Assembly (NCBI GenBank): GCA_965644295.1
Contig: CBFFRP010000669.1
Coordinates: forward strand, 1 to 61,647
DNA: 61,647 nt
Reading direction: 5' to 3'
Origin: Paraphysomonas bandaiensis
Lineage: Eukaryota > Protista > Chrysophyceae
Shown here: one piece after another, positions 1 to 61,330 of the stretch
How positions within the stretch are numbered: position 1 is the stretch's first letter
Layout: each line of letters starts with the position of its first letter
Notes under the pieces: model-generated
Databases searched by the model: none
What the model saw: only the letters and a program-made list of their open reading frames with translations
What the model was told of the DNA's origin: nothing
Position numbers and translations under genes: made by a program

Positions 1-3000
1 TTTGAATTACTTAAAAAACACTACTTTTTACCCGCTAAGCTACAGGTTGACTTAGCTACACAAGAAAAACACTACTTAAAACAATTACATTAAAAGCAAA
101 CAACACCACAAACTTTTTAATCTTTCTAAAAGCTAAAATTATAAAACAATTTATACACCTGCGTAATTATGACTATTCCCATCAAAAAAATTAAAGTACA
201 AAACATATGACACACACACCAATAGCATACTATAGTTGTTCCATAAAACAAAATTCAAAATCACCCAATATTGCTACTTTTCAAAAAATGGAAAAATAAA
301 ATAATTTTTGTTTCAACGAAATAATTTTGACAAAACCGAAATTATCCAATATTGCTATTCTTCAAAAAATGCAAAAAGAAAATAACTTTTGTTTCAGCAA
401 AGCATTTTGAAAAAACCGAAATTTACTTTTCAACAAAAGATCTACGAAAGCTAGTTAGCAATTAACTACGGAATAAAAACTAGCGTTAACAACACGAAGG
501 TTGCAGGATAAAATGTCTTAGTCGATCAAACTAGTACAAAACCGACCGACCAAACTTTTTATTGTATTCCACAAGAATTTATTGGTAACATTATTCATTA
601 TTATTATAATTGAAATGTACATTATCACACATTAGAAATTATCTAGTATTTACTTTTTGAATTACTTTAAAAACACTGCTTTTTACCCGCTAAGCTACAG
701 GTTGACTTGGCTACACAAGAAAAACACTACTTAAAACAACTACATTAAAAGCAAACAACACCACAAACTTTTTAATCTTTCTAAAAGCTAAAATTATAAA
801 ACAATTTATACATTTGCGTAATTATGAATGACTATTCTCATCAAAAAAATTAAAGTACAAAACTTATGACACACACACCAATAGCATACTATAGCTGTTC
901 CATAAAACAAAATCAAAATTCAAAATCACCCAATATTGCTGCTTTTCAAAAAATGCAAAAAGAAAATAATTTTGACAAAACCGAAATTATCCAATATTTC
1001 GATTTTTCAAAAAATGGAAAAAGAAAATAACTTTTGTTTCAGCAAAGCATTTTGAAAAAACCGAAATTTACTTTTCAACAAAAGACCTACGAAAGCTAGT
1101 TAGCAATTAACTTACAGAATAAAAACTAGCGTTAACAACACGAAGGTTGCAGGATAAAATATCTTAATCGATCAAACTAGTACAAAACCGACCGGCCAAA
1201 CTTTTTATTGTATTCCACAAGAATTTATTGGTAACATTATTATTGTAATTGAAATGTACATTAACACACATTAGAAATTATCTAGTATTTACTTTTTGAA
1301 TTACTTTAAAAACACTGCTTTTTACCCGCTAAGCTACAGGTTGACTTGGCTACACAAGAAAAACACTACTTAAAACAACTACATTAAAAGCAAACAACAC
1401 CACAAACTTTTTAATCTTTCTAAAAGCTAAAATTATAAAACAATTTATACATTTGCGTAATTATGACTATTCTCCCATCAAAAAAATTAAAGTACAAAAC
1501 TTATGACACACGCCAATAGCATACTATAGCTGTTCCATAAAACAAAATCAAAATTCAAAATCACCCAATATTGCTGCTTTTCAAAAAATGGAAAAAGAAA
1601 ATAATTTTGACAAAACCGAAATTATCCAATATTGCTATTTTTCAAAAAATGCAAAAAGAAAATAACTTTTGTTTCCGCAAAGCATTTTGAAAAAACCGAA
1701 ATTTACTTTTCAACAAAAGATCTACGAAAGCTAGTTAGCAATTAACTACAGAATGAAAACTAGCGTTAACAACACGAAGGTTGCAGGATAAAATATCTTA
1801 ATCAATCAAACTAGTACAAAACCGACCGGCCAAACTTTTTATTGTATTCCACAAAAATTTATTGGTAACATTATTATTATAATTGAAATGTACATTAACA
1901 CACATTAGAAATTATCTAGTATTTACTTTTTGAATTACTTAAAAAACACTACTTTTTACCCGCTAAGCTACAGGTTGACTTAGCTACACAAGAAAAACAC
2001 TACTTAAAACAATTACATTAAAAGCAAACAACACCACAAACTTTTTAATCTTTCTAAAACCTAAAAGCTAAAATTATAAAACAATTTATACATTTGCGTA
2101 ATTATGACTATTCTCATCAAAAAATTAAGTACAAAACTTATAACAACACACCAATAGCATACTATAGCTGTTCCATAAAACAAAATTCAAAATCACCCAA
2201 TATTGCTACTTTTCAAAAAATGCAAAAAGAAAATAACTTTTGTTTCAGCAAAGCATTTTGAAAAAACCGAAATTTACTTTTCAACAAAAGATCTACGAAA
2301 GCTAGTTAGCAATTAACTACGGAATAAAAACTAGCGTTAACAACACGAAGGTTGCAGGATAAAATATCTTAATCAATCAAACTAGTACAAAACCGACCGG
2401 CCAAAATTTTTATTGTATTCCACAAGAATTTATTGGTATCATTATTCATTATTATTATAATTGAAATATACATTATCACACATTAAAACATTAGAAATTA
2501 TCTAGTATTTACTTTTTGAATTACTTTAAAAAACACTACTTTTTACCAACTAAGCTACAGGTTGACTTGGCTACACAAGAAAAACACTACTTAAAACAAC
2601 TATATTTAAAAGCAAGCAACACCACAAACTTTTTAATCTTTCTAAAATCTAAAAGCTAAAATTATAATAAAATTATACATTTGCCATTTGCGCAATTATC
2701 TATTCTCATCAAAAAATTAAGTACAAAACTTATAACAACACACCAATAGCATACTATAGCTGTTCCATAAAACAAAATTCAAAATCACCCAATATTGCTA
2801 CTTTTCAAAAAATAGAAAAAGAAAATAATTTTTGTTTCAACGAAATAATTTTGACAAAACCGAAATTATCCAATATTTCGATTTTTCAAAAAATGGAAAA
2901 AGAAAATAACTTTTGTTTCAACGAAACATTTTGACAAAACCAAAATTATCCAATATTGCGATTTTTCAAAAAATGCAAAAAGAAAATAACTTTTGTTTCA

Positions 3001-4700
3001 GCAAAGCATTTTGAAAAAGCCGAAATTTACTTTTCAACAAAAGATCTACGAAAGCTAGTTAGCAATTAACTACGGAATAAAAACTAGCGTTAACAACACG
3101 AAGGTTGCAGGATAAAATATCTTAATCAATCAAACTAGTACAAAACCGACCGGCCAAAATTTTTATTGTATTCCACAAAAATTTATTGGTAACATTATTA
3201 TTATAATTGAAATATACATTAACACACATTAGAAATTATCTAGTATTTACTTTTTGAATTACTTTAAAAAACACTACTTTTTACCCACTAAGCTACAGGT
3301 TGACTTGGCTAAACAAGAAAAACACTACTTAAAACAACTATATTAAAAGCAAGCAACACCACAAACTTTTTAATCTTTCTAAAACCTAAAAGCTAAAATT
3401 ATAAAAAAATTTATACATTTGCCATTTGCGCAATTATCTATTCTCATCAAAATTTAAAGTACAAAACTTATTGCACACACACCAGTAACCAATAATATAT
3501 TATAGCTTTCCATAAAACAAATTCAAAATCACCCCATATTGCTACTTTTCAAAAAATACAAAAAGAAAATAATTTTTGTTTCAACGAAATAATTTTGACA
3601 AAACCGAAATTATCCAATATTTCGATTTTTCAAAAAATGGAAAAAGAAAATAACTTTTGTTTCAACGAAACATTTTGACAAAACCAAAATTATCCAATAT
3701 TGCGATTTTTCAAAAAATGCAAAAAGAAAATAACTTTTGTTTCAGCAAAGCATTTTGAAAAAACCGAAATTTACTTTTCAACAAAAGATCTACGAAAGCT
3801 AGTTAGCAATTAACTACGGAATAAAAACTAGCGTTAACAACACGAAGGTTGCAGGATAAAATATCTTAATCAATCAAACTAGTACAAAACCGACCGGCCA
3901 AAATTTTTATTGTATTCCACAAAAATTTATTGGTAACATTATTATTATAATTGAAATATACATTAACACACATTAGAAATTATCTAGTATTTACTTTTTG
4001 AATTACTTTAAAAAACACTACTTTTTACCCACTAAGCTACAGGTTGACTTGGCTAAACAAGAAAAACACTACTTAAAACAACTATATTAAAAGCAAGCAA
4101 CACCACAAACTTTTTAATCTTTCTAAAACCTAAAAGCTAAAATTATAAAAAAATTTATACATTTGCCATTTGCGCAATTATCTATTCTCATCAAAATTTA
4201 AAGTACAAAACTTATTGCACACACACCAGTAACCAATAATATATTATAGCTTTCCATAAAACAAATTCAAAATCACCCCATATTGCTACTTTTCAAAAAA
4301 TACAAAAAGAAAATAATTTTTGTTTCAACGAAATAATTTTGACAAAACCGAAATTATCCAATATTTCGATTTTTCAAAAAATGGAAAAAGAAAATAACTT
4401 TTGTTTCAACGAAACATTTTGACAAAACCAAAATTATCCAATATTGCGATTTTTCAAAAAATGCAAAAAGAAAATAACTTTTGTTTCAACAAAACCAAAA
4501 TTACCCAATATACTGCTTTTCGACAAAAGACCTACTAAAGCCAATTATCAATTAACTGCAGAATAAAAACTAGTATTAACAACAACAAAATTACAGGATA
4601 AAATACCTTAACCCAACTTTAATGTATTACTTTCATAAGAAGAAACTCTTAATGATAGTATGGTATAATTAAAATATATGCTAAAAATGCTTGACCCTCT
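1..4700. repeat. Tandem array of ~7 long units (~586-744 bp), each carrying 1-3 copies of an ~81-bp subunit
   Basis: Anchor TTTGAATTAC recurs at ~1, 656, 1295, 1929, 2515, 3253 and 3997. The last copy decays after ~4500. Confidence 0.95.
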
Positions 4701-5033
4701 CTAGTATTTGTTTTTCAAAATACTGAAATATTGACCAAACTACTGCTTAGGTTAGGAGTAAAATTAACTTATAACCTTATTTTTATTTAACTAACTGTAA
4801 CTGCAAAAACATAAAATGCATCATGACCCTTGGAGCTAACTCATAAAACAGATCTAGAATTTAATTTTTATACATAGAATTACCTAAACCTAGGCACTTT
4901 GTATACTCTCGCGTTAAAAATAGAGAGTGTAAATAGAAAAACAAAAACTACATACTAAATATCTACAGAATTAAAAATTTTTAAAAAAAAATTAATTTTC
5001 AATTGCCAATTGAAAAAATCTAAATTAAAAAGA

Positions 5034-5860
5034 AGTGTTGCTTTGAAACAAAAGTTATTTTCTTTTTGCATTTTTTGAAAAATCGCAATACTGGATAATT
5101 TCGTTGAAACAAAAATTATTTTCTTTTTGTATTTTTTAAAAAATAGCAATATTGGATAATTTCGGTTTTGTCAAAATTATTTCGTTGAAACAAAAATTAT
5201 TTTCTTTTTGTATTTTTTGAAAAGCAGCAATATTGGATAATTTCGGTTTTGTTGAAACAAAAGTTATTTTCTTTTTGCATTTTTTGAAAAATCGCAATAT
5301 TGGATAATTTCGGTTTTGTCAAAATTATTTCGTTGAAACAAAAATTATTTTCTTTTTGTATTTTTTGAAAAATAGCAATATTGGATAATTTCGGTTTTGT
5401 CAAAATTATTTCGTTGAAACAAAAATTATTTTCTTTTTGTATTTTTTGAAAAATAGCAATATTGGATAATTTCGGTTTTGTCAAAATGTTTCGTTGAAAC
5501 AAAAGTTATTTTCTTTTTGCATTTTTTGAAAAATTGCAATATTGGATAATTTCGGTTTTGTCAAAATTATTTCGTTGAAACAAAAATTATTTTCTTTTTG
5601 TATTTTTTGAAAAATAGCAATATTGGATAATTTCGGTTTTGTCAAAATGTTTCGTTGAAACAAAAGTTATTTTCTTTTTGCATTTTTTGAAAAATTGCAA
5701 TATTGGATAATTTCGGTTTTGTCAAAATGTTTCGTTGAAACAAAAATTATTTTCTTTTTGCATTTTTTGAAAAATCGCAATATTGGATAATTTCAGTTTT
5801 GTCAAAATATTTTGTTGAAACAAAAATTATTTTCTTTTTTGAGTTTTTGAAATTTGAAGT
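5034..5860 (-). repeat. ~10 tandem copies of the ~81-bp subunit, inverted relative to the 1-4700 array
   Basis: ATTGGATAAT recurs at ~5151, 5232, 5299, 5380, 5461, 5541, 5622, 5702 and 5782. It is the reverse complement of ATTATCCAAT in the left array. The ORF track shows a 27-aa period. Confidence 0.93.
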
Positions 5861-5879
5861 TTTTCATTTTTTGAAAATT

Positions 5880-6350
5880 TGTTGTATGATCGTAGGCTCG
5901 CGTTTTTAATAAATAGTCCCCCCTACCGGGCGTCATCCCCCCTACAACCCCCCTTGTGGCATCAAATTAATCATAAAAAGTAATATTATTCACTTCTCCC
6001 CTTCTTTCCTCCTTGTATATATATATATATATATATATTCGTCGCCATGCTCGAATATATAGGGTTATTATGGTTCCAGTGATAAGTTAAGGCAACTGAT
6101 CCTCGCGAAACGTACTCGGCTCACTTGCAGAGTAAAGTGCAGCACCCTGTACTGCCAAATGCGAAGCTGTCTAGAAGAAAAAAAAAGTAGAAAAGTAAAT
6201 AGACGATATCCTGTATAATAAAAGTAAAGTATAATATCGTACCCTTCCCATCGCGGCTGGGGGTGGGAAGGATCTAGTAATAGATCCAGCCTGTAGGGGG
6301 AGGCTGGATCTATATATATTAAGAACAAAAAAAAGCCTAGGAATTTTCGC
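5880..6350. promoter_or_regulatory. Unique GC-rich hairpin island; candidate replication origin or control region
   Basis: Contains C-tracts, (TA)n and hairpins at 6203-6240, 6243-6271 and 6280-6313. The function is inferred only. Confidence 0.4.
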
Positions 6351-6354
6351 GTGA

Positions 6355-6660
6355 CTTTTTTTTCGATTTTTGGCCATTTTTTTGCATTTTTTTGCGATTT
6401 TTTGCATTTTTTTTCAAAAATTTGCGATTTTTTGCATTTTTTTGCGATTTTTTGCATTTTTTTTCAAAAATTTGCGGTTTTTTGCATTTTTTGGCGATTT
6501 TTTGCATTTTTTTTCAAAAATTTGCGGTTTTTTGCATTTTTTGCATTTTTTTTTCAAGAATTTGTGAATTTTTTTAAATTTTTTGTTTTTTTTGTAATTT
6601 TTTCGATTTTTTGTAAATTTTTGTGGTTTTATATTTTTTCTATTTTGCATTTTGCATGTT
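6355..6660 (+). repeat. Degenerate short tandem repeats (GCGATTTTTTGCATTTTTTTTCAAAAATTT-like)
   Basis: The motif is visibly repeated, and ORFs in all frames are low-complexity. Confidence 0.85.
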
Positions 6661-6832
6661 TTTAAAATACATTTATAATTTATTTAAATGTATAATATAA
6701 TAAAGTGCTATAATTTTTTTATTTTAATTAATACTAGTGTTAAAGTAGTTTTAATCTAAGTGTTATACAAGTAAGGTTCATTTAATGTAATTTTATTTTG
6801 TTCGGTTCTTGGTGTGTGTCATTAAGATATAT

Positions 6833-7149
6833 TATATATTTATATATTTATATATTTATATATTTATATATTTATATATTTATATATTTATATATTTATA
6901 TATTTATATATTTATATATTTATATATTTATATATTTATATATTTATATATTTATATATTTATATATTTATATATTTATATATTTATATATTTATATATT
7001 TATATATTTATATATTTATATATTTATATATTTATATATTTATATATTTATATATTTATATATTTATATATTTATATATTTATATATTTATATATTTATA
7101 TATTTATATATTTATATATTTATATATTTATATATTTATATATTTATAT
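6833..7149. repeat. Perfect 8-bp microsatellite (TTTATATA)n, ~39 copies
   Basis: Read directly. The ORF track shows an IFIYLYIY period. Confidence 0.97.
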
Positions 7150-10100
7150 TAAAGAAGATAATTGCCGGTTAATTTAATTAGTTTATAAAGAATGTGGTAT
7201 ATAATATAATAAATGTCTATGAGTATAGAATATAGAGAATATAGAATATTTCATTTTAATTTGTTTTGAAGTTATAAAAAGTAAATTTAAGTACTTATAA
7301 GGTCCTTGTTTATTGTGTATTTTTAGTACATTTTTTTTTAAGTATAAAAAAGTTAACTGGTTAGTGCTATATAATATTATATTTTTTGTTAATTTTCTAG
7401 GTTTTGGTATATAAAATAATAGTGTTTTGTGTTATTTTTATAATTAAGTATTATATCGCATAATATTTTTGCAATTTTATTCTATTAATTTTATGTAAGG
7501 TTGGTTTTTATTTTTTCTATATTATTTGTGCTGTTTATGTGTGTTTATTTTTTAAAAGCTTAAAAGTTTTTAGTTTTAATCCTTTGTTTTAAGAGTAAAT
7601 TTAAATATTTACAGGAGGCCCCCTGTAATTTTTTGTAAAAAAGAAGTATTTTATGGTATATTTTAAATAACGGTTAAAAAAATTTAAGAAGGAATTTTTT
7701 TGCTTTTTTTACAAAAAAAGAGTACGTGTTTTTATAGTTTATTTTAATTTATTGCGCTTTTTAAGAGTAAACCTAAATATTTATAGGGAGGTCCCTGTAA
7801 ATTTTGTATAAAAAAGGCATTTTTGATTGTATTTTTAATAAAAGTTAATTAAAAAAAAAGTAAGATTTTTTTGGTTATTTTTTCCTAAAAATGTTATTTT
7901 ATTTTTTTTTATAATTTTTATATAAAAAATTTAAATAATATACTTTTTATATTTTTTGTTAAAAATTTTATTTTGTTAGGTTCTTGGTAGGTGTTATTAA
8001 GATATATTAAAGCAAAAAAGATAATTGCTGGTTAATTAAATTAGTTTATAAAGAATGTGGTGAATATAGAATATTTCATTTTAATTTGTTTTGAAGTTAT
8101 TAAAAGTAAATTCAAGTACTTATAAGGGCCTTGTTTATTGTGTATTTGTAGTAAAAAATTTTTTTAAATAAAGAGTTTTTTTATTATTTTTCTAAGTATA
8201 AAAAAGTTAACTAGTTAGTGTTAGTGCTATATAATATTATATTTTTGTTAATTTTCTAGGTTTTGGTATATAAAAGAATAGTGTTTTGTGTTATTTTTAT
8301 AAATAAGTATTATATTACATAATATTTTTGCAATTTTATTCTATTAATTTTATTCTATTAATTTTATGTAAGGTTGGTTTTTATTTTTTCTATATTATTT
8401 GTGCTGTTTATGTGTGTTTATTTTTTAAAAGCTTAAAAGTTTTTAATTTTAATCCCTTGTTTTAAGAGTAAATTTAAATATTTACAGGAGGCCCCCTATA
8501 AAATTTTTAAAAAAGAGGACATTTTTGGTTGTATTTTTAATAAAAATTAAAAAAAAAAATTTTTAAAGTTTTTTTATTTTTTTTTTTGAAAAAAGGTATA
8601 TATTTTTTATATTTGTTTTGCTTTATTACATTTTAAGAATAAATTTAAATATTTGCAAGTCCCCCCCTGTAAAATTTATAAAAAAAGACGTTTTTGGTTA
8701 TATTTTTAATAAAAAAAATTTTTAAAAAAAGAAGGGTTTTTAGGTTGTTTTTTCCTAAAATTGTTTTTTATTTTTTTTAAAAAAAACTAGGGGGTTGTAT
8801 ATTTTTAAATAATTTTGTACATATGTATGTATGTATGTATGTATTTTTTATATATTTTTGTTTAATTTTTTATATTTTATGTTAATTTTTTTACTTGTTG
8901 TGTTATTTTTATAATTAAGTATTATATTGCATAATATTTTTGCAATTTTATTTTATTCTATTTTTTTATTTTTTATCATTTTGTAAGTTTGGTTTTTATT
9001 TTTTCTATATTATTTGTGCTATTTGGTGTTTATTTTTTTAAAGTTTAAATGCTTTTAATTTTAACCCCTTGTTTTAAGAGTAAATGTAAATATTTGTAGG
9101 CCCTCCCCTGTAAATTTTTGTAAAAAAGAGGTGTTTTAAGGTATATTTTTAATAAAACTTAAAAGATTTTTATTAAAGTTTTTTTTAAAGTTTTTTTTGA
9201 AAAAACGGTATATATTTTTTATATTTATTTTGCTTTATTATATTTTAAGAATAAATTTAAATATTTGCAGGGGGCCCCCCTGTAAAATTTATAAAAAAGG
9301 GATGTTTTTGGTTGTATTTTTAATAAAAACCAATTAAAAAAAGTAGAAGATTTTTTAGGTTATTTTTTCCTAAAATTGTTATTTTATTTTAAAAAAAAGC
9401 TGGGGGTTATATATTTTTAAATAATTTTGTACATATGTATTTATTTTTTCTATATTTTTGTTTAATTTTTTAATCGTTGTGTTATTTTTATAATTAAGTA
9501 TTATATCGCATAATATTTTTACAATTTTATTTTATTCTATTTTTCTATTTTTTATCATTTTGTAAGTTTGGTTTTTATTTTTTCTATATTATTTGTGCTA
9601 TTTACAGGTGTTTATTTTTTAAAAGCTTTTAATTTCAATCCCTTATTTTAAGGGTAAATTTAAATATTTGTAGGCCCCCTCTGTAAAATTTATAAAAAGG
9701 GGTGTGTTTGGTTGTATTTTTAATAAAAACCAATTAAAAAAAAGAAGATTTTTTAGGTTGGTTTTTCCTAAAAATATTATTTTATTTTTTTTATAATTTT
9801 TATATAAAAAATTTAAGTGATATACTTTTTATATTTTTTGTTAAAATTTTTATTTTGTGCATATTTATTTTATAAATTAGGGTGTTTTAGTTTTTTATCT
9901 TTTAGAAATATGAAAACCTGAAATATTTTATTTTAATTTATTATATTTTAAGAGTAAAATTAAATATTTGTAGGGGGCTCTCTGTAATTTTTTGGGAAAA
10001 GGAGGTATTTTATGGTGTATTTTTAATAAAATTAAAAAATTTTTTTTTTTAAGTTTTTTTTTATTTTTTTTTAAAAAAAAAGTATATATTTTTTATATTT

Positions 10101-10200
10101 GTTTTGTTTTATTATATTTTAAGAGTAAATTTAAATATTTATAGGAGGCTCCCTATAAAAAATTTAAAAAAGAGGGCATTTTTGGTTGTATTATTAATAA
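7150..10200 (+). repeat. Degenerate duplicated blocks carrying 9 GC-hairpin modules (AAGAGTAAATTTAAATAT + TTTRYAGG...CCTRTAAA)
   Basis: Block 7150-7960 resembles 8010-8780, and 8780-9400 resembles 9390-9790. Hairpins lie at ~7608, 7780, 8481, 8652, 9093, 9264, 9667, 9967 and 10138. Confidence 0.85.
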
Positions 10201-10304
10201 ATTTTAATTCTTTAACAAATTATATTTAAAAATTTTTTTTTGTATATGTTTGTTATATTTTGTGTGCTTATATAATATAAATTTTTTATCTGTCGTTAAA
10301 AATT

Positions 10305-27719: not shown

Positions 27720-28165
27720 TTTAAATACTCTATAAAACTATAAAATAAAATACAATTTTGTAGGTGATACTCTGTAAAAATAATGTATAATTTTTAAATT
27801 GAGACTATTTAAATTGCTATATAAAATGCCTGTTTTTTAGAAATTACTCTATAAAACTATAGAGGGAAACGGAAATTTGCAGGGGGTACCCTACAAACTG
27901 TTTTGCAACTTTTCAATTTAGTGAAGAATTAAATAATGTTAAATGGGTTTTAAGCTTAATTTTTTTAAGGCATAATAATTTTATAAAAAAAACTTTTTAA
28001 ATTTATTTTTTTTCTATTTTAAAAATTAAAAGATTTAACTTTTGTAAAAAGCAAGTAATTTTAAAACAAATTTAGAAAAATTTAAAAATGTTTGTTTTTT
28101 AGAAATTACTCTATAAATTTATAGATAAAAATATAATTTTACAGGGAATACCCTGTAAAAATACT
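27720..28165 (-). repeat. Inverted partial copies of the 337-bp twin-hairpin unit, lying between convergent transcription units
   Basis: 27955-28160 is the reverse complement of ~48048-48260. Hairpins lie at ~27755, ~27876 and ~28137. Confidence 0.85.
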
Positions 28166-47740: not shown

Positions 47741-48009
47741 AATATTTAAAATTCGGTTTTTAAAAATAATCTTTAAAAAATTTAATTATTAATATATAAA
47801 TAGCTAACACAAAATAAAAAACACCTTTAAAATAAAATTACCTCAATTAAATTTTTTCTGTAACAATAAAAACAGAATAGAATAATTTAATTAGCTGTTT
47901 CTTAAAATTGTTAACTTATCTAATATAAATTATTAAATACTTTTTAAAAACTATTTTAATTTTAAATTAAAAAACTATTAAATTTTTTATAAAAAAAGAG
48001 GAGTAAAAA

Positions 48010-49025
48010 ATTAGTGTATAAAATCAAATTTAAGAGCCGTAAAATACTTTGCAGGGGATACCCTGCAAAATTATATTTCCCTCTATAAATTTATAGAGTA
48101 ATTTCTAAAAAACAAGCATTTTAAAAGATTTTTAATTTTTTCTAAATTTGTTTTAAAATTACCTGCTTTTTACAAAAGTTAAACTTTTTAATTTTTAAAA
48201 TAGAAAAAAAATAAATTTAAAAAGCTTTTTTTATAAAATTATTATGCCTTAAAAAATTAACATATAAAATTAAATTTAAAACCTATTCAACCATTATTTA
48301 ATTCTTCATAAATTTATGTTTTTATTTTTTTATAAGCTTATAAAAAATTAATACATAAAACTAAATTTAAGAGCCATAAAATACTTTGCAGGGGATACCC
48401 TGCAAAATTATATTTCCCTCTATAAATTTATAGAGTAATTTCTAAAAAACAAGCATTTTAAAAGATTTTTAATTTTTTCTAAATTTGTTTTAAAATTACC
48501 TGCTTTTTACAAAAGTTAAACTTTTTAATTTTTAAAATAGAAAAAAAATAAATTTAAAAAGCTTTTTTTATAAAATTATTATGCCTTAAAAAATTAACAT
48601 ATAAAATTAAATTTAAAACCCATTCAACCATTATTTAATTCTTCATAAATTTATGTTTTTATTTTTTTATAAGCTTATAAAAAATTAATACATAAAACTA
48701 AATTTAAGAGCCGTAAAATACTTTGCAGGGGATACCCTGCAAAACTATATTTCCCTCTATAAATTTATAGAGTAATTTCTAAAAAACAAGCATTTTAAAA
48801 GATTTTTAATTTTTTCTAAATTTATTTTAAAATTACTTACTTTTTACAAAAGTTAAACCTTTTAATTTTTAAAATAGAAAAAAAAGAAATTTATAAAATT
48901 ATTACACATTAAAAAATTAAGATATAAAATTAGCTTAAGTTTTACGTAACATTATTTAATTTCTAACCCGCAAAATTTTTATCTTTTTATAAGCTTATAA
49001 AAAATTAATGCATAAAACCAACTCC
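48010..49025 (+). repeat. Three tandem 337-bp units, each with the hairpin TTTGCAGGG-GATA-CCCTGCAAA and the palindrome CTCTATAAATTTATAGAG
   Basis: Hairpins start at 48048, 48385 and 48722. Confidence 0.95.
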
Positions 49026-49186
49026 AAATTATATTTTTATATTTTATAAAATAACTTTAAAATATATTTATAACATAAAAAACTAATACTATAAAAATGC
49101 AAAAGATTAAAACCCGATTTTAAAAAATAATTACTTGACTAAAAATTACATAGTACAATACTATACTTACCTTTTATTTTTAACTA

Positions 49187-57055: not shown

Positions 57056-57077
57056 TTTTTATTAAAAAAAATAATTT

Positions 57078-58662
57078 ATATTTTTATTCCAGCCACACGT
57101 TCCCGTACGACTACCTTGTTACGACTTCATCCCGGTTACAAATCTGATAATACTATTCTTTTTATTAATAAAAAACTTAAAAACTATTTTAAAGAAATTA
57201 TTAAATCATCTACTAAATTATTAAATATTTCAAACCAAACTTGCTCCCAGCACGTGACGGGCGGTGTGTACAAGATCTAAGCACATATTCACCGTAGCAT
57301 GCTGATATACGATTACTCGTGATTCCTCCTTCATAATGGCGAGTTGCAGCCACTATTCCGAACACAGAAAATGTTAAAGATTTACTTTAAATTACTTTAT
57401 GGTACAACTTTTTGAGTTTTCTATTGTAGCACATGTGTAGCCCAGTTTATAAGGGCCGTAAGGGCTTGACGTGATTCTCGCCTTCCTCAATTTTATTAAA
57501 AGCAGTTTTTTATGAGCAGACTTTTATTTACTTCTAAATAAGAAATATCTAACATAAAATAAGAGTTACGTTCGTTAAAGGAGTTAACCAAACACCTCAC
57601 GGCACGAACTGACGACAGCCATGCAACACCTGTATTAACACTTTTAAAAATTAACTATATTTATATTTTTTAAATATTTTGTTTTTCAACAAAAAAAATT
57701 AATATACAAAAACTGGTAAGGTTTCGCGCGTATTATCGCATTAAACCACATGCTCCACCACTTGTGTAGACCCCCGTCAATTCCTTTGGGTTCCAGTTTT
57801 GCAACCGTACTCCCCAGGCGGAGTGTTTACGCGTTAGCTGTATACAAAAATTTCCTTTTGTATTAACACTCATCTTTGACAGCATAGACTACCAGGGTAT
57901 CAAATCCTGTTTGCTCCCTATGCTTTCGTTCCTCAGTGTCAGTATAAGTCTAGATAACCGCTTTCGCCACTGGCATTCCTTTATAAATCTCAGGATTTTA
58001 CTCCTATTTATAAAATTCTATTATCCTTTACAAAACTCAAGAAGAAGTATATTATAAGAATTATTTAGTGTTACCCAAAATATTTTCCTTTAAATAACTA
58101 AATCCACCTACGAACCCTTTACGCCCAATCATTCCGGATAACGCCTACCCCCTTCGTATTACCGCGGCTGCTGGCACGAAGTTAGCCGGGGCTTTTTTAA
58201 AAAAAACGTCAAACTCATTTTTTAAATTTAAAACTTTACAACCGAGTCATAAATCACTTTAATCCTCTTTTGTGTTGGCCTCGTTTACATAACATCACTG
58301 GATCAAGCTTTCGCTCATTGTCCAAGATTCCACACTGCTGGCACGAAGCCTGGGCCTTATCTCAGTCCCAGTGTGACTGTACATTTTCTCAAACCAGTTA
58401 AACATCATAGGCTTGGGTAGCTTTTACCTAACCAACTACCTAATATTAAACTAAAACAATCTTAAATCAATGTTATATCTTTTTATTTAAATATTTTCAA
58501 TACAAAGTATTTATTAGAAAACTCTAATGTTGATTTATTTAAAATTTAAGGTAAAATTTTTAGTCTTTACTCACCTGTACGCTAAGTTATAAAAACTTTA
58601 ACTAGCATATGTTAAACCATGTTATTAGCGTTCACCCTGAGCCAGGATCAAACTCACTGCAA
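57078..58662 (-). rRNA. rns: Small subunit rRNA (ends approximate)
   Basis: GAGTTTGATCCTGGCTCAG, GTGCCAGCAGCCGCGGTAATAC, GTACACACCGCCCGTCAC and GAAGTCGTAACAAGGTAG on the minus strand. Confidence 0.97.
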
Positions 58663-58737
58663 ATATAGCCAATTATATTTGACTAAATGCTAATAAAATG
58701 GGTCCTTTTTTAAACATAACTCTTATTCTTTACTTAT

Positions 58738-59027
58738 TTGTTTAAAAGGTTTATTAGTACTTCTTAACTTCAACTTCACAGTTGTTACATTATAAGCCTA
58801 TCAACGTAAATATTCTATTACGACCTTAAAAAATTATTTTGAGGTAAACTTCTTACTTATATGCATTCAGTAATTATTTTTTATAAACGTAGCTACTCAG
58901 CATTGCTTTTGATTAAACAACTGATACACCAGAGGTTTTACGTAATTTGGTCCTCTCGTACTAAAATTTAATCCTCTCAATTTTTAACAATTACAGTAGA
59001 TAGGGACCGAACTGTCTCACGACGTTC

Positions 59028-59076
<49 letters not shown>

Positions 59077-59090
59077 AACCATTTACAGCT

Positions 59091-59125
<35 letters not shown>

Positions 59126-59338
59126 GATATCGTCGATAGGAACTCTCAAAAATCATTAGCCTGTTATCCCCGGCGTACCTTTTATTCGTTGAGTGATGAC
59201 CTTTCCACACAGAATCACCAGATCACTATGACCGACTTACATCCCTGTTTGATTTGTTAATCTTTCAGTCAAATAGATATGCCATTATGCTCCCAAATAA
59301 AATATATTCGAATCTACCTTTGTACGCCTCCGTTACTT

Positions 59339-59369
<31 letters not shown>

Positions 59370-59482
59370 TATCATAAGCTGTTTATAAAATTAAGTAAAA
59401 TCAAAATTTAAGGGTGGTATTTCACTGGACACTTACGTTCCCACCTATTCTTCACAAAAATGTTAATTTTACAACTTATAAC

Positions 59483-59515
<33 letters not shown>

Positions 59516-59591
59516 CTGTAATTAACCCGCATCTTCACGGGTATTTCAAATTCACCAAGCATATGTTGGAGACAGCGGAGAAGTCGTTACA

Positions 59592-59638
<47 letters not shown>

Positions 59639-61330
59639 TGGACCGTCAGAGTTACAGCCGCCGTTTACTGGGGATTAGTTTGATTGCCTTAGCAAACGCA
59701 CATCACCTTGCAGCACCGGGCAGGTGTCAGCCTCTATACATCTTTTTTCAAATTTGCAGAGACATGTGTTTTTATTAAACAGTCGCTTCCCCTTCTTTAA
59801 TGACAATAAACAAAAATTATTGTTTATTACTCCTTTTTCCGAAGTTACAGAGCTAATTTGCCGAGTTCCTTCAACATACTTATCTTGAACGCCTTAGTAT
59901 ATTCTACCAATCTACCTGTGTCGGTTTAGGGTACGGTATTTCATGTTCAGCTGTTTCCAGAAAATTTTTTAACATCAAAGAAATCACTATTATTTAATGT
60001 ATTTAAAATTTTGTAACTATAAAACTAAACTTCCCATTAGCTTATACTTTTGTAATTTGCCTTAGGGACCGCATATTTTTAAATTAAAATTACGATTTTT
60101 TTAAAAATTGAATCGAAAACCTTAGATTTACGGCGATAACGTTATTTCGTTATTTTTAGCTACTAATGCCAGTATCCTCACTTTTATTATTTAAAGTTAT
60201 TTTAACAAATAACCTTTATCAATATATAAAACGTTCTGCTAACTATAATACTAAGTCGGCTATTAATTTAGACTCACTAAATTTTTGATACAAAATAACT
60301 AAATCAATGAGCTGTTACGCTTTCTCAAAAAAATGACTGCTTCTAAGCCTACTTTATGATCGTCTCTGTTATTTGCAATCTTAACACTTAACTAATATTA
60401 AAGGCCTTATTAAATATACTGGGCTGTTTCCCAATGGACTATCGACCTTTGCACCGATAGTCTGACTCCACAAAAAGTATCAAAAATTTATTCGAAGTTT
60501 TTCAAAGTTTAGTAAGGTCTACGACCCCCTTTACTTTAAAAGTGCTCTACCCAAATTTTGATTTATTGCAGGCTATACTAAAATATATTTCGCAGAAAAC
60601 CAGCTATCCCTAAGTTTGATTAGCCTTTCACCCCTAACCACAAGTCATCCCAATTTTTTTCCACAAATACGGGTTCGGTCCTCCAAATTACGTTGCCATA
60701 AAAATATCAACCTGCTCATGGTTAGATCACTTAGCTTCGGGTTTTATAAAAAAGACTATAGCTACTATTTCAAACAATCTTGACTTATCTTTGTCTACAC
60801 GAAGTTTAAACTTGCCTTCCTTATAAACTCACTGGCCCATTATGCAAAAGGTACGCTATAACTAATTAATTAGCTCTAACAGCTTTAATGCACTAAATTT
60901 TAGGTTCTTTTCACTCTAAAAAAGTCCTTTTTCACCTTTCCCTTACGGTACTTGTTCACTATCGATCATTAAAAACTTTAGGCACGAAGGTAGATCTCCT
61001 AAATTAACAACAAATTTAACATAATCCGTCATTTATTAAAAAACAAATAAAAAGTACTACAGGACTAAAACCTTCTTTGGAATTCATACATTTTACTTGC
61101 TTTTTTGCCTTACAATATATTCGCTCACCACTACTAACATTTTCTCGTTTGATTTATATTACAGGTTACTAGAATGTTTTACTTCACCTAATTAACTCTT
61201 CCAAAGATAAATTTTTTAATAAGTTATTAGGTTTCACTTTAATAAAATCTTACCTACTTAATGCAGTACACAACTTAAGTATTTTTAATGCCAAGGCAGC
61301 CTTTTAGTGCACTCACTAAATACACTAATA
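58738..61330 (-). rRNA. rnl: Large subunit rRNA (ends approximate)
   Basis: GCCTTGGCA near the 5' end, CGAAATTCCTTGTCGGGTAAGTTCCGACC, GGCACCTCGATGTCGGCTC and the sarcin-ricin loop AGTACGAGAGGACC. Confidence 0.97.

Follow-up and report, generated by a model that had tools for sequence, protein, structure and literature searches.

A single-copy GC-rich island in the repeat region of a stramenopile mitochondrial genome, a candidate DNA-level control element

Introduction

What kind of element is the single-copy, GC-rich and hairpin-bearing island that lies within the 22-kb repeat region of this stramenopile mitochondrial genome, and does it serve replication or transcription, encode an RNA, or have no function at all? 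We know of no explanation for the huge repeat regions of many algal mitochondrial DNAs (mtDNAs), of no mapped replication origins or promoters in the mitochondria of ochrophytes (photosynthetic stramenopiles), and of no established mode of replication for stramenopile mtDNA. It is common for algal mtDNAs to have large tandem-repeat regions. Those of Aureoumbra and Phaeodactylum extend over ~22 and 35 kb, respectively, and a length of 26 kb is reached in Plocamiomonas (PMC13582874). An earlier note on this DNA had proposed that the island is an undescribed switch-like origin or a structured non-coding RNA. The current study examines the structure, composition, relatives, and genomic setting of the island and weighs these proposals against their alternatives.

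Results

The island lies in the non-coding part of a mitochondrial genome

The window, i.e. the whole 61.6-kb stretch of DNA analysed here, is the mitochondrial genome contig (C669) of a 62.5-Mb eukaryotic assembly comprising 669 contigs. The presence of rnl, rns, tRNAs, and nad and cox genes argues for an authentic mtDNA context, and the gene content includes nad5, nad7, nad11, nad1, cox1, and cox2, among others. ARAGORN and Rfam identified 23 tRNA genes and one group II intron in addition to the two rRNA genes, and neither trnG nor trnT was found in the whole window. All of the genes are located between 22.4 and 61.3 kb, while positions 1-22,437 are non-coding and filled with repeats (Table 1). 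AT content is 75-90% in this genome. The two contig ends (61325-61647 and 1-180) belong to separate portions of the long repeats and show no overlap, leaving the circle unclosed. Because the contig ends inside repeats with no seamless join, the non-coding region may exceed its assembled length and repeat copies may be missing. A literature search found no published account of this mitochondrial genome.

The earlier note had described the setting of the island as AT repeats. This is only partly accurate, since the region 1-5000 has 25-28% GC and is composed of 570-750-bp long repeats rather than plain AT repeat. Closer to the island, the 80-bp units at 5040-5852 can pair with the units to their left via arms of up to 257 nt that are 90-94% complementary, and the last of these units fades gradually into the island itself.

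Table 1. Coordinates of the island, its internal features, and the surrounding landmarks of the window
Feature	Position	Strand	Details
Long repeats	1 to ~4500		Seven or eight, 570-750 bp, 25-28% GC, each with a short 80-bp-unit array
Unique block	4486-5053		26% GC, between inverted 80-bp arrays; GC/AT skew sign changes here
Left flank	5040-5852	+	About ten tandem 80-bp units, opposite in orientation to those within the long repeats of 1-4500
Single-copy GC-rich island	5853-6350
Inverted repeat, left arm	5901-5929		Imperfect; pairs with 6290-6326
Inverted repeat, right arm	6290-6326		Imperfect
Direct repeat TCCCCCCTAC	5917-5926, 5936-5945	+	Two copies; - strand reads GTAGGGGG
C6 tracts	5931-5955	-	C6 on +, G-rich on -; top G4Hunter window of the whole mtDNA, -2.0
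(TA)n tract	6016-6038
Additional hairpin	6032-6061		Perfect 10-bp stem, 10-nt loop, abuts the TA tract; z -3.9
GC-rich unique centre	6064-6180		~45% GC; no excess structure, ORF, or similarity
Hairpin 1	6203-6209/6234-6240		ACGATAT/ATATCGT, weak 7-bp stem, 24-nt AT loop; -3.4 kcal/mol, z -2.2
Hairpin 2	6243-6250/6264-6271		CCTTCCCA/TGGGAAGG, 8-bp GC-rich stem, 13-nt loop ending GGGGG; -9.7 kcal/mol, z -3.0
Alternative hairpin	6270-6287		GGATCTA-GTAA-TAGATCC, 7 bp, 3' arm overlaps 5' arm of hairpin 3; -5.4 kcal/mol
Hairpin 3	6280-6292/6301-6313		Perfect 13-bp stem, loop GTAGGGGG; -13.6 kcal/mol, z -6.3 (ssDNA)
Right flank	6351-6650	+	T-rich 10/50-bp arrays, gradual start at island edge
T-rich arrays	6351-7149		10/50-bp arrays and (ATATATTT)40
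Hairpin modules	7150-10250		Short GC-centred hairpins
Low-GC arrays	~10.3-21 kb		~10% GC
Hairpin family, non-coding region	7590-10160 (7.6-10.2 kb)		Constant leader containing TTTAAGAG
Hairpin family, gene spacer	27750-28160 (within 27.5-28.3 kb)		Spacer of convergent + and - strand genes
Hairpin family, nad1-cox1	48040-48745		~337-bp tandem repeat between nad1 and cox1
rns	57077-58663	-	Bacterial-type
rnl	58737-61324	-	Bacterial-type

The island is unique and GC-rich

The island is a genuine, single-copy, non-coding mtDNA element and the unique GC-rich core of the 22-kb repeat region. In 100-nt windows its GC content measures 41-46%, which is the highest value in the non-coding 22 kb and equals that of the rRNA genes, as compared to ~10% in the tandem arrays and mostly 20-30% (maximum 33%) in 1-kb windows of protein-coding sequence. 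A composition this far above that of the surroundings argues for constraint or for a special origin, and the GC-rich centre (6064-6180) contains no feature that accounts for it. Within the 62.5-Mb assembly the island matches only itself, and its comparison with the rest of the window yields only AT-rich low-complexity matches, such as those of the TA tract. The borders on both sides grade into flanking repeat units, which argues against a chimeric join. It had been claimed that the island is the only extended GC-rich unique sequence among the repeats, and it is indeed both the GC-richest segment and single-copy, but it shares the repeat region with a second unique block of lower GC (4486-5053).

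Excess structure is confined to a block of perfect palindromes

The three consecutive hairpins and the competing 7-bp stem described in the earlier note were found just as it had claimed, and the other features that it listed are likewise all present where it had placed them. The additional hairpin that abuts the TA tract had escaped its attention. When folded as single-stranded DNA, the three-hairpin block (6195-6320) has z = -6.8 on the + strand and -6.6 on the - strand, and structure in excess of that of shuffled sequences is limited to the palindromes of this block. The centre (6040-6180) and the left third (5880-6015) of the island fold no better than shuffles on either strand (z = +1.1, +0.3, -0.65, and -0.73), and about 300 nt of the island (5950-6200) are GC-rich yet non-palindromic. 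Folded as RNA, the island as a whole yields z = -2.9 (+) and -4.1 (-).

Among the perfect hairpins of the whole 61.6 kb whose stems have 3 or more G/C, hairpin 3 surpasses all others in length, and only one other, at 28137-28160, attains at least 10 bp. For comparison, perfect hairpins of at least 11 bp whose stems include 4 or more G/C number only three in ~830 kb of related mitochondrial loci. Hairpins 2 and 3 are paralogous to each other and arranged in tandem, and they have CC..CC, a G-run, GG..GG, and ATCTA in common. Their stems differ at two positions, both of which are compensated on the opposite side, and the pairing has thus been kept. These two compensatory pairs, which are internal to the island, are also the only covariation seen. 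The stems are perfect Watson-Crick palindromes whose stability is the same on either strand, and in this they are more typical of DNA-level elements. The description of the locus as a switch is apt insofar as the sequence does contain mutually exclusive pairings; however, the alternative stem is much weaker than the one with which it competes (-5.4 vs -13.6 kcal/mol, as ssDNA). Judging from these overlapping complementarities, switching between the competing stems may occur.

An inverted repeat closes the island and a short motif is enriched within it

The ends of the island form a collinear, imperfect inverted repeat with a local alignment score of 21, compared to 13.4 +/- 2.3 for shuffled sequences, 14 of 2000 of which reach 21 (p about 0.007). 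The complementarity between the loop of hairpin 3 and the upstream direct repeats, which had been noticed previously, is real and belongs to this larger inverted repeat (5901-5929/6290-6326). In the minimum free energy fold of the + strand RNA, the long-range helix of the inverted repeat replaces hairpin 3, and in the fold of the - strand RNA hairpin 3 forms.

The motif GTAGGGGG occurs five times in the window against an expectation of 0.11, and three of the five copies reside in the island: the loop of hairpin 3 contains one, and the other two are read from the - strand at positions 5919 and 5938. A further motif with three copies in the island, AAAAGTAA, shows no genome-wide enrichment. The (TA)n tract says little about function, since the genome is 75-90% AT. 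As regards the C- and G-tracts, which had been likened to G-tract primer sites at origins, the three C6 tracts at the left constitute the top G4Hunter window of the mtDNA (-2.0), and the third-highest window (6253-6277, +1.44) lies in the island on the opposite strand, but no canonical four-tract G4 motif with loops of up to 15 nt is found in the island.

A dispersed hairpin family shares half-site motifs with the island

Elsewhere in the mtDNA there is a family of palindromic hairpins, TTTRYAGG-[GC-rich]-CCTRYAAA, for which a regular expression finds 14 matches in the window vs 0.27 in shuffles. The copies at 27.9-28.1 kb are oriented opposite to all others. The leader motif TTTAAGAG is essentially restricted to the leaders of the family and does not occur upstream of genes, and among viral contigs and those of prokaryotic genomes the leader was matched only once, by chance, in a bacterial MAG. 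These hairpins may be terminator or processing signals, or they may be mobile elements. The 1.4-kb spacer between nad1 and cox1 (47741-49186) is a second, small repeat region that comprises three ~337-bp units, each with a perfect family hairpin plus a short AT palindrome.

From its sequence, GTAGGGGG in the island looks like the 5' half-site of this family and CCCCCTACAA looks like its 3' half-site. The order in the island is 3' half, 345 nt, 5' half, and a simple insertion into a family member therefore does not fit. The half-site motif could be a protein-recognition site or a by-product of the process that generates the palindromes.

No gene, RNA family, or relative of the island was detected

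The Rfam search that the earlier note had proposed as a check was performed over an 801-nt segment (5700-6500) and matched no RNA family at E <= 10. Rfam likewise detected no 5S rRNA, tmRNA, or RNase P RNA anywhere in the window at E <= 10, and the mtPerm-5S model (RF02547) had no match in the whole assembly. At both the gathering threshold and E <= 10, Rfam reports for the window and the nad1-cox1 spacer consist of only rRNAs, tRNAs, and the one group II intron. ARAGORN under default and relaxed settings identified no credible tRNA or tmRNA in the island, as the relaxed search produced low-quality metazoan-type predictions only. We accordingly rejected the island as a tRNA, tmRNA, RNase P RNA, or group II intron remnant, none of which was detected by ARAGORN or Rfam. 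A protein gene or pseudogene was rejected as well, given that Pfam offers no match for the longest ORF, which comprises 129 aa, is on the - strand, and extends into repeats. The stop-free - strand frame at 6071-6349, used as a degenerate probe against metagenome (JGI), viral, and prokaryotic contigs, found no confirmed match. The exact hairpin pattern has 0 matches in viral contigs, and blastn of the island against plasmids and phages returned no match.

As relatives, we used 80 metagenome mitochondrial loci collected in a nad5-based scan, the best of which (L002) has 74% amino-acid identity. An island-like sequence is present in 0 of the 80 nad5-linked loci, tblastx of the island against these loci and the rest of the window found nothing significant, and the 80 loci contain neither the hairpin family nor clusters of GTAGGGGG. 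In the closest locus, L002, genes follow after trnW, and there is no non-coding region at that place. In ENA, three nad5 variants (P0008-P0010) belong to the same 90%-identity cluster as the protein of the window.

Two features of the related loci were observed in passing. A related stramenopile mitochondrial contig (JACCDN010423944.1, 32.8 kb) has nad5 near both ends in inverted orientation (L012 and L013); the two loci, comprising 12.8 kb from each contig end, have identical nad5 and tblastx match coordinates and may therefore be the arms of a large inverted repeat, with an rnl-rns-trnF block being seen in L012 only, not L013. In two further loci, two or three tandem trnF(gaa) genes directly follow nad5 (L003 12049-12377 and L004 12011-12349).

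The strand skew switches beside the island

The cumulative GC skew of the window has its minimum at ~5000, and both GC and AT skew change sign at 5000-5100. This switch coincides with the switch in repeat orientation and is located ~900 bp to the left of the island, not inside it. Skew in the window tracks the orientation of repeats and genes, and repeat orientation alone can explain it. Regarding transcription, we know of no promoter consensus for this lineage; no motif common to the island and the region upstream of rnl was found, and the yeast promoter nonamer is absent from 5853-6350, as determined by reading through the sequence.

Discussion

The island is unique, GC-enriched, structured symmetrically on both strands, bracketed by an inverted repeat, and supplied with a motif that is enriched in the genome. 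Any part that it may play in replication or transcription is something we infer from these sequence features. Our preferred, albeit tentative, reading takes the island for a control element that operates as DNA, be it as an origin, a promoter, or both. The palindrome block (6195-6320) would extrude hairpins or a cruciform, or would form hairpins on displaced single strands, within an easily melted AT context, and the extruded structure would mark a start site for replication and/or transcription. Since the left side has C-tracts and the right side has G-tracts, RNAs proceeding outward from the AT-rich centre would be G-rich in either direction, and such RNAs might form stable R-loops that prime DNA synthesis, comparable to what is envisaged for cluster C of the yeast ori and for the vertebrate CSB II. 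A control function is favoured by several considerations: 1) the high GC content has been maintained against a background that has drifted to ~10% GC, 2) the duplicated hairpins have kept their pairing, 3) the asymmetry of the G-tracts would make outward transcripts G-rich on both sides, and 4) the island is situated within 1 kb of the skew minimum and the orientation switch. By way of analogy, the published segment of Hemiselmis andersenii discussed below, for which the same role has been proposed, may be counted in favour of a control element as well. Placing this function at the level of DNA is the most economical choice, since the stems are strand-symmetric and the non-palindromic GC-rich parts lack RNA-like structure. 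A much more specific scenario, which we consider speculative and unlikely, would make the island a bidirectional origin. Transcription would begin in the AT-rich centre and proceed divergently, giving transcripts that turn G-rich to either side and prime both strands through R-loops. Three structures would compete with one another and thereby gate initiation, namely the hairpins of 13 and 7 bp and the long-range helix formed with the CCCCCTAC repeats further upstream. In this scenario, a DNA-binding factor specific to the lineage would recognise GTAGGGGG and would bind the dispersed hairpin family as well.

The most serious competitor of a control element is an origin of the island without any function, namely as a cluster of GC-rich palindromes plus leftover spacer produced by the same selfish or slippage-prone process that spread the hairpin family. 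It would then be comparable to the GC clusters of yeast, the repetitive hairpin-forming elements of sponges, or the double-hairpin elements of Allomyces. We regard this as somewhat unlikely, yet much speaks for it. A dispersed family does exist in three separate non-coding regions (14 matches vs 0.27 expected), its half-sites seem to recur in the island as GTAGGGGG and CCCCCTACAA, hairpins 2 and 3 stem from a local duplication, and the perfection of the stems on both strands suggests a recent DNA-level origin. Neither a homologue nor the family motif was encountered in ~830 kb of related mitochondrial loci, and the elements are thus lineage-specific. What such a process leaves unexplained are the ~300 nt at 5950-6200 that are GC-rich and not palindromic, as well as the order of the half-sites, which is wrong for a simple insertion. 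Moreover, the hairpins of the island are repeated nowhere else, whereas mobile hairpin elements are multi-copy.

A different possibility would be a novel or extremely divergent small RNA transcribed from either strand, for example a mitochondrial 5S rRNA (rrn5). In AT-rich organelle genomes a GC content like that of the rRNA genes, which the island has, is a classic sign of an RNA gene; in addition, rrn5 was not detected across the window, and the whole-island RNA fold is in excess on both strands (z -2.9 and -4.1 for + and -, respectively). Very divergent chrysophyte 5S rRNAs can also escape Rfam models, and the chrysophyte mitochondrial 5S candidate is barely detectable by covariance models (PMC4267664). 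Nevertheless, we consider a small RNA improbable, and the structured-RNA half of the earlier proposal is weakened accordingly. Besides the lack of any match to 5S, mtPerm-5S, tmRNA, RNase P, other Rfam families, or tRNA, the excess structure is composed of perfect, strand-symmetric palindromes only, with neither G-U pairs nor bulges. The left third and the centre lack excess folding, the stability of the non-palindromic GC-rich parts is no greater than that of shuffled sequences, whereas a 5S rRNA would be expected to show a stable three-way-junction fold in a unit of ~120 nt, and the site is located deep in the repeat region, where it is not syntenic with rns and rnl. Least probable is a foreign or artefactual insert, be it DNA of nuclear, plastid, bacterial, or phage origin or a chimera that arose during assembly within collapsed repeats. 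It is true that the composition of the island is unlike that of its surroundings and that the repeat region is imperfectly assembled, judging from contig ends that lie in repeats and do not close cleanly into a circle. However, there is no second copy or source in the 62.5-Mb assembly and no match in the plasmid, phage, viral, metagenome, and prokaryotic collections, both borders decay gradually into repeat units, and GTAGGGGG is common to the island and other parts of the same mtDNA.

A control element of this sort would not be without precedent among algae. The 19.7-kb repeat region of Hemiselmis andersenii mtDNA includes a ~300-bp repeat-free segment with a unique stem-loop (PMC2397417). 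Nearby there are one tract of 78% GC and another consisting of AT only, and a role in replication or transcription was proposed for the segment with no accompanying test; the authors also caution that GC skew follows the orientation of transcription (PMC2397417). Both mtDNAs are algal and ~60 kb in size, with ~20 kb of tandem and dispersed repeats and many further palindromic stem-loops. The island fits the Hemiselmis-type description, in which a few hundred bp within a ~20-kb repeat region are free of repeats and combine a unique stem-loop with adjacent GC-rich and AT-only tracts. This is a purely descriptive class that has no established function. The label "undescribed" given to the island previously is thus only partly right, as a comparable repeat-free stem-loop segment was already known in H. 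andersenii (PMC2397417). There are also clear distinctions between the two. Hemiselmis is a cryptophyte, whereas the present mtDNA is that of a stramenopile, and there is no sequence similarity. The Hemiselmis segment adjoins the coding region and has one stem-loop, whereas the island is ~6 kb from rnl and possesses four perfect hairpins, competing stems, and a closing inverted repeat. The repeat region of Rhodomonas salina mtDNA is a further close comparison (PMC2397417). The island is non-random, and it probably represents a kind of DNA-level control element that has been noted in other algae before. New here are the closing inverted repeat, the paralogy of hairpins 2 and 3, the fourth hairpin, and the putative half-site link provided by GTAGGGGG.

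More distant parallels can be drawn to several well-known mitochondrial elements, all of which are functional analogies and not a matter of membership. The ori/rep sequences of Saccharomyces cerevisiae consist of GC clusters in AT-rich DNA, two of which form a hairpin, while the transcript of a further G-rich cluster is thought to be processed into a primer; there are 7-8 homologous copies, each beside a nonanucleotide promoter. Hairpins 2 and 3 of the island and its C/G tracts resemble this arrangement with no homology involved, and unlike ori/rep, the island is single-copy. In vertebrates, the G-tracts of CSB II may stabilise an R-loop, and OriL forms a stable hairpin on displaced single-stranded DNA. 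The island has G-tracts and a stable hairpin as well, but neither a canonical G4 nor homology to these elements. GC-rich palindromes are also known as GC clusters in yeast, PstI palindromes in Neurospora, and double-hairpin elements in Allomyces. In sponge mitochondrial genomes, repetitive hairpin-forming elements (RHEs) have been described (PMC2800124). Like the RHEs, GC clusters, and double-hairpin elements, the island presents GC-rich palindromes in AT-rich spacers, with two adjacent hairpins, and it belongs to an mtDNA that has its own dispersed family. Unlike mobile hairpin elements, its hairpins are single-copy, and they are linked to the dispersed family by an 8-10-nt half-site motif only.

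At present, the island is a descriptive feature of an already reported type. As a single-copy, strongly structured GC-rich element in a repeat region, it is a natural first target for the mapping of start sites, and if functional, it would offer a way to study how organelle genomes are maintained in a group of algae that matters ecologically. The same region also harbours an alternative origin candidate, the unique block at 4486-5053. Around this block, the 80-bp-unit arrays at 4261-5852 face each other as inverted repeats, an arrangement that could allow flip-flop inversion or the formation of a large cruciform.
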